Positions 43,230 to 49,468 of a DNA stretch of 64,000 bases are shown piece by piece (position 1 is the stretch's first letter; each line of letters opens with the position of its first letter). Below the pieces are notes generated by a model that did not search any database, was not told the origin of the DNA, and saw nothing but the letters and a program-made list of their open reading frames with translations. A program made the position numbers and the translations under genes. Source of the DNA: Dimorphilus gyrociliatus (taxonomy: Eukaryota > Animalia > Annelida); assembly GCA_904063045.1 (NCBI GenBank), contig CAJFCJ010000006.1, forward strand, positions 2,222,946-2,286,945, in the 5' to 3' direction.

Positions 43230-44305
43230 AATTATACTCAATTAATATAACTGTCAAAGAATTTCACTCTAAAATGACAATACAATTTTAATACACACTA
43301 AAAAAACTGAGAAGATCTTTAACAGATTACAATAGGAAACCGAATATTTACCGTCTAGAAGCTTACATGATATGATTTGCAACTATGGAGATATATTTCT
43401 GATAAGACTTTTCTGATATGATAATAAAACTCGGTTCCAGTTTCAGAACGATATTCCAGGTTATTGCACGCATATACTCATATACTAATTAAAAACACCC
43501 TGCTTGTTTATTATTAATACCCTGAATTGAGTTACGTTATACGCATTTTATATAAATATTATTCGACGTCTTTTTTATAAAAAAAAAAGCATGCAAAGTA
43601 TTTACACGGAAACAAATGGAACAATATCATTTCAGTTTTTCCAGCTGTATAGAATATGGCGGAGACTGATTTTCATAGGAGTTGTATAACGTCTATAATT
43701 AAATAGATTCATGTACAAAAAAACACCAATGTTAAACTGTATACATCTATTTACAATGAGTTATGTTTATTTTAACATTGTAAAGAAATAAACTTGATGT
43801 CTTTATGTTGATGATTAGTTTCTTTTTCAAGAGAAACACTTTATTCTTACCTCTAGTTATCTTTTTGTTCAGAGTATAAGGGTATTTATACATTATACGA
43901 TAGTTTCTATATTAGCTTTCCCTTACTTTTAGCCCACTTTTTTGTTTTATCATTTTTGGTATTATGTGCATGACGCTTCTTATCAATTTATGATTTTTAT
44001 CTATGAAACGGTTTAATTATTCATAAAAATTAAATTCTTCGTGACTTTCTTAAGTTGAAAAGGGATGGCAAAGTTTGATAAAGTTTTTTCTATATAAATC
44101 TGGTTACCTGTTCAAATCTATTATGTACTAATATTTTATCATTGTGGAAGGGATAACCATACCGTTTCTTGGACTGTTACTCTTTTAAATTAAGCCTTTT
44201 CGGTTTAGATTTGCTACCAGACGTTAGTCTTTAAAAAACAACTTATCTAATAACTCTGATATTTCACACTTTCTTTAAATTCTATTAAAGAACTTTTGGA
44301 GCAAA

Positions 44306-47300
44306 ATGCTTTGGAAGGCGTGTGCTCTGCTGTTTTTCGTTGCATCAATTGGCTCTTCTTTTGGTGATCGTAACAATATTACAGCAGCTAAAATATGGCT
44401 TGAAGAATATAATACAGAGGCTGAAAAAGTACGTCCCGAAGCTCAAGAAGCATCTTGGACATGGAATACTAATATAACAGACTATAACAATCGCCTAAAA
44501 GTAAGTTAATATTTTCATATAAATCATATTTCTTAAATTTTTTTCAATATTATTTCAATCTTTTCTCCCTTCACACAAAGTATGATGTTAACCATCAAAT
44601 ATCTTTGTTAATCTTTTAAAAACCTTAACGAAAGAGGAGATTATCGAGAGTTTATATAACTTTTGAGTGGATTAAAAGAAAAGTTAAGCACTTAATTCAT
44701 TTTCTCCTCAACTAAAAGAAGCTGTTTTATTGTGTAATGTACAAAATGGGCTGTAATCAATATACTAAGATTTTGATAAGATACTGCAAATTTCAAGTGT
44801 TTATGAGCAAATTGTTTGATGAGAAAATTTATTATTTCTAACAATGTTTCTATTGTTTTTCAAGAGGATGAAAGATGTTTACTCTCTCATCTTTTAATTT
44901 CTGATCTATTTAGAAACAAAACGTTAGTTTTCCACTAAAAAAACATTAAAAAGCTTTTTCTCGTATCAATTTGTTATAATGTTCGATATACAAAAAGTAT
45001 AAAATATATACAAAACACATATATGCTATTGTCCATGTGCCAAGAAACAGCAGATAGAAAGGTCGACTGATAACTATGTATAATATAGTCTTGAGATATA
45101 ATATTCTATTTAATTACCTTTTCCAGCTACCTGTTACTAATAAAATACATTCTGCTATCTTTTATTAGAGAGTTACGCCTATTGAGTATCTGTTTAGATA
45201 AGACAAAATGTCTGTAAAGTATAGATTATAACTTAAGAATGTAAATTAGAATAAAGTTTAACATTTTATTTTATCGCTAATTTTCATGTTTTAAGATTAA
45301 ACTCTATTATCTAGTGTACGTCTTGATAAATATGTATTTATAACGTATTTAGCATATAAAATAACCTTACTGCAAATGAATAAACAATGGATAAAATATC
45401 AAATTGAAGTTTTATTACTATTATTTTCTTTAATTTCAATAGTCAAATTAAATTATTTATACAATATTATAATTATTATTAAATGTCAAGTAATTTATTG
45501 TATTTATAACCCAATTAATTGTAACTTCAATATGTCGCTTTGCTTTTATTATATAAGTATATTTTAGCTATTAAGTTTATCTTTAAAAATGTTCATTAGT
45601 TGGAAGCTGAAAAGAAGAAATCTGAATTCGATAAACGCTCTTATAATCAAACTTTGAATTGGGATTGGAAAAATTTTACCGAGATCAATGCTAAAAGACA
45701 ATTCTATAAGATTGCCGATATTGGAGAATCGGTTCTACCGACAGATAAATTTCAACAGATCACTAAAGCAAAATCCAATATGCAAAGCGTATACTCAAAG
45801 GCTAGAGTTTGTAATAAACCTGGAGATCAGGATCCATCCAAATGTTACCCATTAAATCCAACTTTGGAGAATATTATGGCCAAGTCAACTGATTGGAAGG
45901 AGCTAGCTTGGGCTTGGGAGGGATGGAGAAATGAAACTGGAAGGAAAATGCCCGATGATTATGAAAAATTTGTTGAACTAGCAAACGAAGCTGCCGGTAT
46001 GAATGGCTACACAGATAATGGAGACTATTGGAGAAGTTGGTACGAAACCGAAAACTTTGAAAAACAAATGGAGGAGCTATTTATCGGTTTGAAAGACTTG
46101 TATAAACTACTACATGCTTATGCAAGAAAAAAGCTAAAGGAAAGATTTGTTGGTCATCCATTTCCCGATAGTGGTCAAATTCCAGCCCATCTCTTAGGAA
46201 ATATGTGGGCTCAGAGTTGGGGAAATTTGTTCACACTTTTAGCTCCCTATCCCGGAAAACCTTTAGATGTAACTGAAATGATGAGGGAACAGGTTCTTTT
46301 CAATTCTTTCTATCACCTATTCAATCTTTACATACTAAATTTTCTCTCTTAGAACTATACTACAAGAAAAATGTTCGATTTGTCTGAAAAATTCTTTACC
46401 GATCTCGGTTTGGACCCTATGCCACCCAAATTCTATAATGACTCTATGTTGGATAAGCCAGAAGACGGTAGAGACGTTGTATGCCACGCATCGGCATGGG
46501 ATTTTTACAACCGAAAAGACTTCCGGTATGAAATTTTTTAACTTGAATTTCTTGTTAAACATAACATCTTCAAGTATGGAATTTTTTATATGTTTTCTTT
46601 TTATTTCTAATTTTAAAAGTATTAAACAATGTACTCAAGTGACAATGGATTGGTTGATAACAACGCATCACGAAATGGGTCATGTTCAATACTTTTTGCA
46701 ATACAAAGATCAACCAGTGGTTTTTAGAAGGGGTGCCAATCCAGGTTCGTTTAATAGTAACAAACAAACAAAAAGCAAATAGAGTTTTTTATATATTAAT
46801 AGTATTTTTTTTATTTTGTTTATTTAATCTTCTTTAAACTTGAATTGGCGTCTCTAGTTGATAAATATTTTGTTTACGATTTTCTCACATTTACTCAGGA
46901 ATACTGAGTGACAACTTCATTTAAAATTATCATACAGAATCAAACAATGTACTCGAATAACTATGGATTGGTTGATTACAACACACCATGAAATGGGTCA
47001 TGTACAATACTACTTACAATACAAAGATCAACCAGTAGTATTTAGAAGGGGTGCCAATCCAGGTTAAAGAAGTTTAAATTCGCAATAACTTCATATCTGA
47101 ATTAATATTTCCCACAATTTGCTTATATTTTTATAATGTTTTAATATAGGTTTCCATGAAGCTATTGGAGATGTTCTTGCTCTGTCTGTATCTACACCTA
47201 AGCATTTAAAAAAAATTAATTTACTCAGGCCAAATCAAAATCCAGATGATGAAGGTTTAAAATATTTTATAATGATGATAATTTAATTAGTGAAATATTT

Positions 47301-48350
47301 TTTTTATGTATTTGTTTTTTATCTTAGAACTACAATTAAACTTCCTTATGAATCAAGCTTTGAAAAAAATTGCTTTTATTCCCTTTGGCTATCTTATTGA
47401 CCAATGGCGTTGGAAAGTATTTAAAGGAGAAACTAAGAAAGATGAATACAACGAAGACTGGTGGAATTTAAGATGCAAACATCAAGGTGTCTCCCCACCC
47501 GTCCAAAGATTTAACACAGATTTTGACGCTGGTTCTAAATTTCATGTTCCAAACAATACACCTTACATCAGGTAATAAATATATTTTCTACTATAAAAAA
47601 AAGACATGAAAGTACAGTTCCGATGATTGTTTTTTCCAGATATTTCGTAAGTTACGTCATCCAGTTCCAATTCCACAAAGCTCTTTGTAAGGAAGCAGGA
47701 CACAACGGCCCATTACACAAATGCGATATTGATCAATCCACAGAAGCCGGCAACAAGCTTGCGTAAATTTTAAATTACACTTAATTATGGTATGCATATT
47801 TCCTAACTCTAATAAATCCAATAGAGCTATGATGAAATTAGGATCATCCAAAGAATGGCCTGACGCAATGGAAGCAATAACAGGTATATAACACAAAGAT
47901 AATTAATCTTTTAATATCGTATATTCATTGAAAATTGAACAACAGGTCAAAGAAAGATGAATGTCAGCGATCTTATAGAATACTTTGCACCATTGGAAGA
48001 TTGGCTTAAGAAAGAAGTTAAAAATGAAACACTTGGCTGGGATGATCAGTGTGGAAGGGTTAGTATTATTACTTACTAATACATATAAATACAGATTTAC
48101 ATGCATATAAATATATAAATTGTTATAGAATTTTACCATCCCCACTCCCCCTCCAGTAAGATAAATTTAATACTTTAGCAATTTACCATTTCTTATATTC
48201 AACAAAAATTTTCAGACTTCACCTCCAACTACACCAACACCAACACCCCAATCGTCTACAGTTAAACCTACTAGTGGTTTTGATAGTATCCATAATAATA
48301 AAACTTTTATTGGTATCTTTATAGCAATTCTTGCTATTTTTGTGCGATAA
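44306..48350 (+). CDS. ACE: Angiotensin-converting enzyme (peptidase M2), single catalytic domain, with duplicated active-site exon and a GPI-signal-like C-terminus
   Basis: Signal peptide, [49 protein letters not shown] and YIRYFVS..QFQF. A Pro/Thr stalk precedes a short hydrophobic end. Confidence 0.97.
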
Positions 48351-48706
48351 ATACACACTTGCGTTTAAGCATAGTCACTATCTCTCTGTCTCTTGTAACT
48401 CAAAGCTGAGCATTTTTGCTACATAAATTCCTTTTATATATCTTATCTCTCTCTCTCTGTTTGCTTAATAATTGCAGATATTTTAATAGTTACAAAGTAC
48501 TCTAATGATACATATTGTTTGTCAACAATAACTACTTCTATGTTTATTTTAGTTTTCTGATTTCTGAATAAAAGATTTAGATGGATGTATTAACTTAAAC
48601 AGTAAATAAACTTTAAAAGATACTAATACATCATGTTTCATATGTTACTATTATTTTTATTTACAAATAAATAGAGAATTTCTAATTGAATATGTAATTT
48701 AATTGA

Positions 48707-49468
48707 TTATTTCACTTTAACTGGAATCTTTGAACGATTTAACCAATTTCTTTTCAGATTTGGGGTAATGGAATGCGGACAAAATCCATATTTATAGCTA
48801 TTTATATCATTTTTCATTGAATTAGATTTAATCGATTTTTCAATGACTTGACCATTATTTTCTGGATATTTCAATTCTTTTGTATCTGTGCTAAATGTAA
48901 AAGTTACATCAACACTTTCGTCATCTCCTTCTGTATGACTTCCTGAGACTTCTGATTTTGATTTCATTGTCGTTTTAAACAAGTTCACTTTATTTTTTCG
49001 ATTACCGGATATTGTCTTTGTTTTAGTGTTTGACCTTTTGACCGAGTTTATCGCTCCATCAACGTCAGTTACAGATTCTAAAATTGATATTGGGATGCCT
49101 TTTATTTTTGACGATAGGGTTCTAGCTGTATTCATTACAGTTGGACTACAACTTCTTCGTCTTGGGGGTGATACTAAAGATTTCTTAAGCCTATTAGAAG
49201 GAGCTTGAATTGAAAATGATGCAGCTTTTACAGATTTTGATCTTTTCATTGGAGTTCTTTTCAAACTTTTGACTGTTCTTAAATATTCGTTTGCCTCTAA
49301 TCTGACAGACTCCATCTCTTTCCAAATGTTTTTATTCTCTTCGTCTATTTGTTTATATTTGCCTTGGTAAACTAAAAATAACTTTTCGATTTCATTGAAT
49401 GAATTTTTTATATTCTCCAAATTTTTACTGACATCTTCTTCAATTAAATATTTTTGGAATTCCACCAT
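48707..49468 (-). CDS. Uncharacterised single-exon protein (N-terminal coiled coil, S/K/R-rich disordered region, C-terminal SxIP)
   Basis: 253-codon ATG-initiated ORF in AT-rich DNA, far longer than expected by chance; no family recognised. Confidence 0.7.
   Translation of the reverse strand: MVEFQKYLIEEDVSKNLENIKNSFNEIEKLFLVYQGKYKQIDEENKNIWKEMESVRLEANEYLRTVKSLKRTPMKRSKSVKAASFSIQAPSNRLKKSLVSPPRRRSCSPTVMNTARTLSSKIKGIPISILESVTDVDGAINSVKRSNTKTKTISGNRKNKVNLFKTTMKSKSEVSGSHTEGDDESVDVTFTFSTDTKELKYPENNGQVIEKSIKSNSMKNDINSYKYGFCPHSITPNLKRNWLNRSKIPVKVK

Follow-up and report, generated by a model that had tools for sequence, protein, structure and literature searches.

Tandem duplication of an exon followed by use of one copy at a time is a well-known origin of mutually exclusive exons, and several such systems serve as points of comparison here. 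Exons 9 and 10 of PKM are duplicated exons of equal length, used one at a time, that alter a ligand pocket of the enzyme. Exons 2 and 3 of alpha-tropomyosin exclude each other sterically across an intron that is too short. In Dscam, by means of a docking site and selector sequences, and in 14-3-3 xi, competing RNA structures steer the choice between mutually exclusive exons. We describe a further case of this class in the single-domain ACE (peptidase M2) gene of the annelid Dimorphilus gyrociliatus, contained in a stretch of 64,000 nucleotides (nt) of contig CAJFCJ010000006.1 (positions 2,222,946 to 2,286,945 of the forward strand, assembly GCA_904063045.1; hereafter the window). The interest of the case lies in what is exchanged, namely the catalytic helix of the enzyme and its S2 pocket: PKM swaps an allosteric site, whereas Dimorphilus ACE swaps the helix carrying the catalytic zinc ligands together with a substrate subsite. 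The two versions differ between Phe (exon A) and Tyr (exon B) at the same position at which the C and N domains of human somatic ACE differ. In vertebrate ACE, a whole-domain duplication has placed both versions in one polypeptide, whereas Dimorphilus has one domain in which a 41-residue segment is swapped by splicing.

We consider it probable that exons A and B are mutually exclusive cassette exons that arose by tandem duplication, that they switch a Phe/Tyr (F/Y) residue of the pocket, and that an intronic element steers the choice between them. Tandem duplication of the exon encoding the zinc-binding motif HEMGH (an instance of HEXXH) would have been followed by one-or-other splicing, and this by the Phe/Tyr swap at the S2 pocket. 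The coordinates of the features discussed are collected in Table 1.

Table 1. Features of the Dimorphilus ACE locus (window coordinates) and tandem HEMGH exons in other species (coordinates of the contig given); residue pairs are those at human positions 369/381.
Feature	Position	Strand	Basis or remark
Single-domain ACE (peptidase M2) gene	44306..48400	+	exon borders from RNA joints; 11 coding exons, 663 residues
Upstream constitutive exon	46353..46525	+	donor serves both A and B; joints 46524 to 46619 and 46524 to 46937
Exon A, HEMGH exon with Phe at the F391/Y369 position, major form	46620..46744	+	sequence, RNA joints up- and downstream, both public protein models
3' end of exon A and donor, alternative pairing partner of the intronic element	46729..46747	+	duplex energy, prediction with B site blocked
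Conserved intronic element in the A-B intron, antisense to exon 3' end and donor	46830-46859	+	conservation and predicted pairing
Exon B, HEMGH exon with Tyr at the F391/Y369 position, minor form	46938..47062	+	sequence, RNA joint to upstream exon
3' end of exon B and donor, preferred pairing partner of the intronic element	47047..47072	+	duplex energy, folds
Next constitutive exon	47150..47254	+	joint 46742 to 47148, translation
Capitella teleta (KB295454.1), two tandem 125-nt HEMGH exons, 36 nt apart	L089:3630-3915		Y+R, then F+D
Capitella teleta, first exon (Tyr+Arg)	L089:3630-3754		unannotated
Capitella teleta, second exon (Phe+Asp)	L089:3791-3915		annotated
Pecten maximus, four tandem HEMGH exon copies, borders as in Dimorphilus	L092:16302-19423		Y+K, D+G, F+D, Y+R
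Strongylocentrotus purpuratus, five tandem copies, fused with the next exon	L093:26141-31125		F+N, Y+D, Y+R, D+G, Y+R

The initial annotation of the locus, made from the sequence of the window alone, had described two 125-nt versions of the HEMGH exon, and the sequence agrees exactly with its positions, lengths, boundaries and peptides. Each exon is preceded by AG and followed by GT; the first base is the third base of an Arg codon, the last base is the first base of a Gly codon, and a 41-residue ACE segment carrying HEMGH is encoded by each. The two exons differ at 16 of 125 bases (87% identical). The 11 synonymous codons and three residue changes counted originally were recovered, as 10 codons within the exon plus the split Arg codon and as Q/R, V/I and F/Y; two of the three codons that change the residue also carry a synonymous change. 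Nei-Gojobori estimates are 0.036 for nonsynonymous (dN) and 0.78 for synonymous (dS) divergence, a dN/dS of 0.05. Similarity between the two exons ends at their borders (repeat match 46618-46747 against 46936-47065), and the surrounding introns are unrelated. Inclusion of both exons, or of neither, shifts the frame of the enzyme, as had been pointed out, and the translated models run into a stop within a few codons; such messages are presumably removed by nonsense-mediated decay. The exons are adjacent and homologous, equal in length and phase, and each has its own splice sites, the properties by which tandem exon duplicates are recognized.

Use of the exons in RNA was examined in four public runs (X1, X2, X3 and X8) of assembled contigs aligned to positions 44200-48300. 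The upstream exon is joined to exon A in all four runs and to exon B in X3 and X1. X3 shows zero listed differences from the window, with 12 of its 14 pieces at least 99% alike, and contains spliced contigs at high depth. Its depth is 1687 for the joint from the upstream exon to A and 528 for the joint to B, so that B makes up ~24% of the two arms together; in X1, a coral metatranscriptome, the corresponding depths are 6.1 and 5.7 (B ~48%). X2 is a marine metatranscriptome in which the ACE exons (44291-48299) belong to a relative diverged by ~4-5%, and field samples seem to contain a close relative of the worm or a divergent population of it.

Separate joints to A and to B were observed, and no A-to-B joint is among the joints listed for the four runs, which are all but one of those recorded; the proposal of mutually exclusive splicing stands in these respects. 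For A, the joint to the next exon is listed directly; for B, we infer it from contig geometry and depth. Both arms of X3 are contigs of 163 nt that end 3 nt past the exon, on a GTT that the next exon has in common with the intron, and leave 5 letters unaligned. The common contig across the junction with the next exon reaches a depth of 2368, near the sum of the A and B arms. Because the arms are of equal length and their depths sum, they describe a bubble in which A and B both rejoin the same next exon.

A search of the Logan assemblies with exon 2 of the gene gave a 79%-identical fragment and, from it, four genomic contigs (L001-L004) of a second dinophilid whose protein is 76-84% identical to Dimorphilus ACE. 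Both HEMGH exons, 125 nt long with AG and GT intact, are present in L001, L002 and L004; L003 stops just after the first, A'. The paired exons that the initial annotation had suggested seeking in related species were thus found, and with the same assignment as in the window, Phe in A' and Tyr in B'. The Q/R and V/I differences do not occur in the relative, which has other differences between A' and B' instead, leaving F/Y as the sole protein difference between the two versions that is common to both dinophilids.

The base differences per 125 positions are 10 for A against A' and 15 for B against B', compared with 16 for A against B in the window, 20 for A' against B' in the relative, and 19 and 19 for the two cross pairs. 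Six informative sites unite A with A' and B with B' and one supports the alternative, grouping by species, which indicates that the duplication is older than the split of the two dinophilids. All exon pairs in the window and the relative have dN/dS of 0.02-0.05, with dS of 0.45-0.77 between orthologous copies, and each exon has changed just 2-3 residues between the two species. The substitution pattern argues that both copies are under strong purifying selection, in line with what had been proposed from the window. A transcript from a third source (74% identical) is of the A type.

These observations also bear on whether the duplication is an artefact of assembly or of haplotypes, which we regard as extremely improbable. 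The similarity of A and B stops at the exon borders amid unrelated introns, in RNA each version is found spliced to the same upstream exon, and contigs of a different species from other sequencing runs carry the same pair. Exons A and B are thus genuine and conserved, and the assembled RNA contigs show them used singly.

When aligned to solved chains of human ACE, the F/Y site, four residues after the second His of HEMGH, falls at C-domain F391 and N-domain Y369. The S2-pocket role assigned to this site at the outset is confirmed by that alignment and by published work: the unique S2-subsite residues are Y369 and R381 in the N domain and F391 and E403 in the C domain, and the Y369 hydroxyl touches the P2 group of the N-selective inhibitor 33RE (PMC7148434). 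The same alignment puts the V/I site at V373/V351 and the Q/R site at T372/R350. The latter correspondence is as initially annotated. R350 is missing from the eight selectivity residues listed in PMC7148434, and neither the Q/R nor the V/I difference is kept in the relative. Both exons encode Arg at the R381 position, and they are alike at the D354, S357 and T358 positions, the human selectivity residues that fall within the exon. In Dimorphilus, unlike between the human domains, the Tyr/Phe position alone toggles. As judged from sequence, isoform B has an N-domain-like Y+R pocket and isoform A a hybrid F+R pocket. The two isoforms may consequently favour different P2 residues in substrates or inhibitors, and a functional difference between them is plausible, perhaps modest.

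The cassette is not peculiar to Dimorphilus ACE: it is widespread among invertebrates and already present in database gene models. Tandem HEMGH exons occur in Capitella teleta, in Pecten maximus (four copies) and in S. purpuratus (five copies), against two in Dimorphilus (Table 1). RefSeq models, which are database annotations, contain equal-length ACE isoforms that vary only in or around the HEMGH exon; such isoforms are found in Pecten, Ostrea, Mizuhopecten, Littorina, Biomphalaria, S. purpuratus and Lytechinus. The mollusc isoforms differ exactly within that exon, with the same borders, phase and length of 125 nt; the isoform sets of Pecten maximus (isoforms X1-X3), Ostrea edulis (X1/X2), Littorina saxatilis (X1/X2) and Mizuhopecten (X1-X4) are same-length swaps like that of Dimorphilus. 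The sea urchin sets (S. purpuratus isoforms X1-X4 and Lytechinus variegatus isoforms X1-X3) are same-length swaps as well, but over a longer exon fused with the next, which spans residues 362-429 in S. purpuratus.

Among the invertebrate versions, the contrast met most often sets Y+R against F+Asp or F+Gly. The Y+R and F+Asp exons of Capitella, scallops and Lytechinus match the difference between the human N and C domains at both S2 positions, and by sequence the pairs of Y+R and F+acidic exons parallel Y+R in the N domain and F+E in the C domain of the human enzyme. The initial annotation had suggested that a single-domain ACE obtains by splicing what vertebrates obtained by domain duplication; the F/Y swap in the relative and in other phyla agrees with this parallel, and the two substrate specificities that it envisaged are an extrapolation from the pocket.

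The set of versions also includes an Asp+Gly exon, found in both a mollusc (Pecten maximus) and a sea urchin (S. purpuratus), and Pecten maximus has in addition a version of the exon with HEIGH. In Lingula, Lineus, Holothuria, the gene on contig L006 and the three-domain gene on contig L088, each domain has one HEMGH exon, so the cassette is not universal. The nemertean Lineus longissimus has two ACE isoforms, X1 and X2 (P0292 and P0395), that are of equal length and differ at residues 122-145, in an N-terminal exon; by sequence comparison this suggests a second swappable exon in the ACE family. A metagenome scan with exon 2 returned mostly distant, apparently bacterial M2 peptidases, as judged by source names and intron-less matches, and two intron-less eukaryote-like contigs with a single Tyr version each. 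The single-domain ACEs of lophotrochozoans have a literature of their own (PMC3235092), and a full-text literature search found no paper on alternative HEMGH exons in ACE.

The two isoforms might be functionally equivalent, with F/Y neutral and the pair kept for regulatory reasons, such as a tissue or stage splicing programme, or in slow decay. Phe and Tyr are both tolerated at the position and about equally frequent in the set of ACE homologues (27 Y and 26 F). Selectivity in human ACE takes several residues jointly, Y369 cooperating with R381 and with distal residues (PMC7148434). Given that each exon changed so few residues between the dinophilids, the F/Y difference could have been retained by mere ancestry in a comparison of two species. 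Slow decay is difficult to reconcile with a dN/dS of ~0.05 on both copies and splice sites that are intact across a dS of 0.45-0.77, which imply that both are maintained, and F/Y is the one protein difference that both dinophilids share. In addition, the alternative copies of Capitella, scallops, oyster, periwinkle and sea urchins vary at this very site, as a rule together with the R381/E403 position, which would be hard to explain without selection on the pocket. On balance we think equivalence of the isoforms unlikely.

The choice between the exons probably lies with a 30-nt element in the 193-nt intron between A and B, according to conservation and predicted pairing. At the element 27 of 30 bases are the same in the intron of the relative, and the remaining introns of the two dinophilids do not align; none of 500 shuffles reached 27/30 (maximum 23). 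The element is complementary to the exon end plus donor over ~20-25 base pairs (bp) in both species. A duplex scan that covered the pre-mRNA from the upstream exon through the next exon gave −29.3 kcal/mol in the window and −27.2 kcal/mol in the relative for the B donor region, −22.0 and −21.1 kcal/mol for the A donor region, and about −16 kcal/mol in both species for the next-best site. Shuffled elements had a mean best energy of about −18 kcal/mol with a standard deviation (SD) of 2.2, and 0 of 100 reached the observed value. Minimum-energy folding of contexts of 400 nt and 680 nt pairs the element with the B donor in both species; with the B site blocked, its predicted partner becomes the A donor, again in both. 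Where the element has G in the window and A in the relative, the pair with an exon U is kept (G-U and A-U), and a T/C change in the element together with A/T at donor position +4 turns a bulged helix (window) into a continuous one (relative) without breaking it.

In the mechanism that we propose, the element would mask either the B donor or the A donor, never both at once; the masked donor would be silent and the other exon spliced, such that each mRNA would carry A or B. The stronger predicted pairing covers the B donor, which fits A as the major form. Dscam and 14-3-3 xi resemble this arrangement in having a conserved intronic element with alternative, exclusive pairings to each exon. In the Dscam type, pairing draws the chosen exon near and activates it, whereas the Dimorphilus element is predicted to cover a donor and silence its exon. 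Steric exclusion of the alpha-tropomyosin type is ruled out in Dimorphilus by the 193-nt intron; it fits Capitella, in which the 36-nt spacer looks too short for splicing out.

The exclusion could come about without such a helix, from splice-site competition followed by decay of frameshifted messages, the intronic block being a splicing-factor site instead of a donor-masking element. An exon length that is not a multiple of 3 means that early stops could suffice to give the mature pool an exclusive appearance; conservation of an intronic block, taken alone, is accounted for just as well by protein binding, and the covariation support, from two species, is thin. What such a site would leave unexplained is that the block is antisense to the exon end and donor over ~20-25 bp in both species, that its duplex energies lie ~4.5-5 SD beyond the shuffle mean, that the B donor is its minimum-energy partner in long contexts, and that a G-U/A-U pair is kept and the T/C and A/T changes leave the helix unbroken. 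We take competition and decay to be a serious possibility, though a somewhat improbable one, and retain donor masking by the element as the preferred explanation.

Other candidates for a switch were set aside. The initial annotation had drawn attention to a 6-bp hairpin at 46893-46909; the hairpin is present in the sequence, but it is not conserved in the relative, and it has no part in the mechanism proposed here. A 14-nt repeat of the core of the element (46536-46549 against 46833-46846), just past the donor of the upstream exon, is likewise not conserved in the relative and was dropped. For a U12-type switch, the donors (GTATGA, GTTCGT and GTTAAA) lack the ATATCC/GTATCC consensus.

The central idea of the initial annotation, alternative HEMGH exons that toggle a specificity residue of ACE, is consistent with all of the sequence evidence. 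In addition to the joint action of the S2 residues and the possible ancestry of the F/Y difference considered above, several points weigh against the reading of A and B as an exclusive pair with a pocket switch steered by an intronic element. A single hydroxyl, the difference between Phe and Tyr, may change little. Contig assembly drops rare forms, and rare messages with both exons or with neither could escape detection in such data; B is linked to the next exon by contig geometry and not by a listed joint; and X2 and X8 show A alone, the latter at a depth of just 2. The RNA helix is predicted from pairing energies in two species, with sparse covariation.

The gene itself is compact and AT-rich, and its product carries a signal peptide, a stalk rich in Ser, Thr and Pro, and a hydrophobic anchor at the C-terminus. 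The end of the gene model is the last base taken into it, the stop codon lying before 48400. The translation of the isoform A model is identical at every residue to a public Dimorphilus gyrociliatus protein (P0367, CAD5115775.1, DgyrCDS4718). A second public isoform of 630 residues (P0335) also contains exon A and departs from the first only at the C-terminus; exon B is in neither member of this two-member protein cluster. Pfam PF01401 is matched by every exon tested, always above the 23-bit cut-off, with E-values of 2e-72 for exon 2, 2e-18 for exon A, 5e-18 for exon B and 4e-38 for a later exon. Over its full length the protein shares 53.5% identity with Lingula ACE, and a search of 50% representatives returned no match above 53% identity. 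The constitutive exon downstream of the pair opens with the motif GFHEAIGD, whose Glu is the counterpart of the third zinc ligand of ACE.

Elsewhere in the gene, X3 contains contigs of depth ~11 (exons 1800) over 44581-45208 in intron 1, with a minor joint from 44500 to 44581; this signal (44500-45600) could represent a retained intron or an alternative exon of rare use. In the juxtamembrane part, a microexon of 27 nt (48129-48155) is backed by RNA joints and by the public protein. P0335 has, in place of the Ser/Thr/Pro stalk and anchor, a 20-residue hydrophobic tail (public annotation, window 48058 onward), and the stretch coding for this tail was not located within window 48000-48700. Beyond the gene, on the − strand, lies an open reading frame of 253 codons (48707-49468), for which there is no Pfam match on record; the relative has an opposite-strand gene of 265 residues at the same position (L001:3591-4388). 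Judged by position and strand, local gene order around ACE may be conserved between the two species.

The history of the cassette admits more than one account. In a tree built from the 41-residue versions, the sequences cluster for the most part by lineage; its resolution does not suffice to date the duplication or duplications, or to tell one old duplication with homogenisation from repeated duplications. We put forward, as a speculative and rather doubtful suggestion, that the alternative HEMGH exon is an old bilaterian device that would give one ACE gene N-like (Tyr+Arg) and C-like (Phe+acidic) pockets, that the vertebrate two-domain enzyme fixed a spliced dichotomy that already existed, and that in Dimorphilus one intronic RNA element masks one donor at a time.

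The predicted donor-masking element would be a compact design for exon choice, and one that is directly testable. The public Dimorphilus models lack exon B and the Capitella model lacks the first copy, so that proteomic and functional work based on them would miss one form of the enzyme. The isoform pairs described here are natural, minimal pairs in which the role of a Y/R against an F/acidic pocket can be tested. The difference in specificity between the N and C domains of ACE has long been credited to vertebrate domain duplication; in Dimorphilus, splicing switches a pocket residue at which those two domains differ, within a single-domain enzyme, and in several other phyla the two S2 residues change in concert. 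One may therefore ask whether the N/C dichotomy predates the vertebrate domain duplication.

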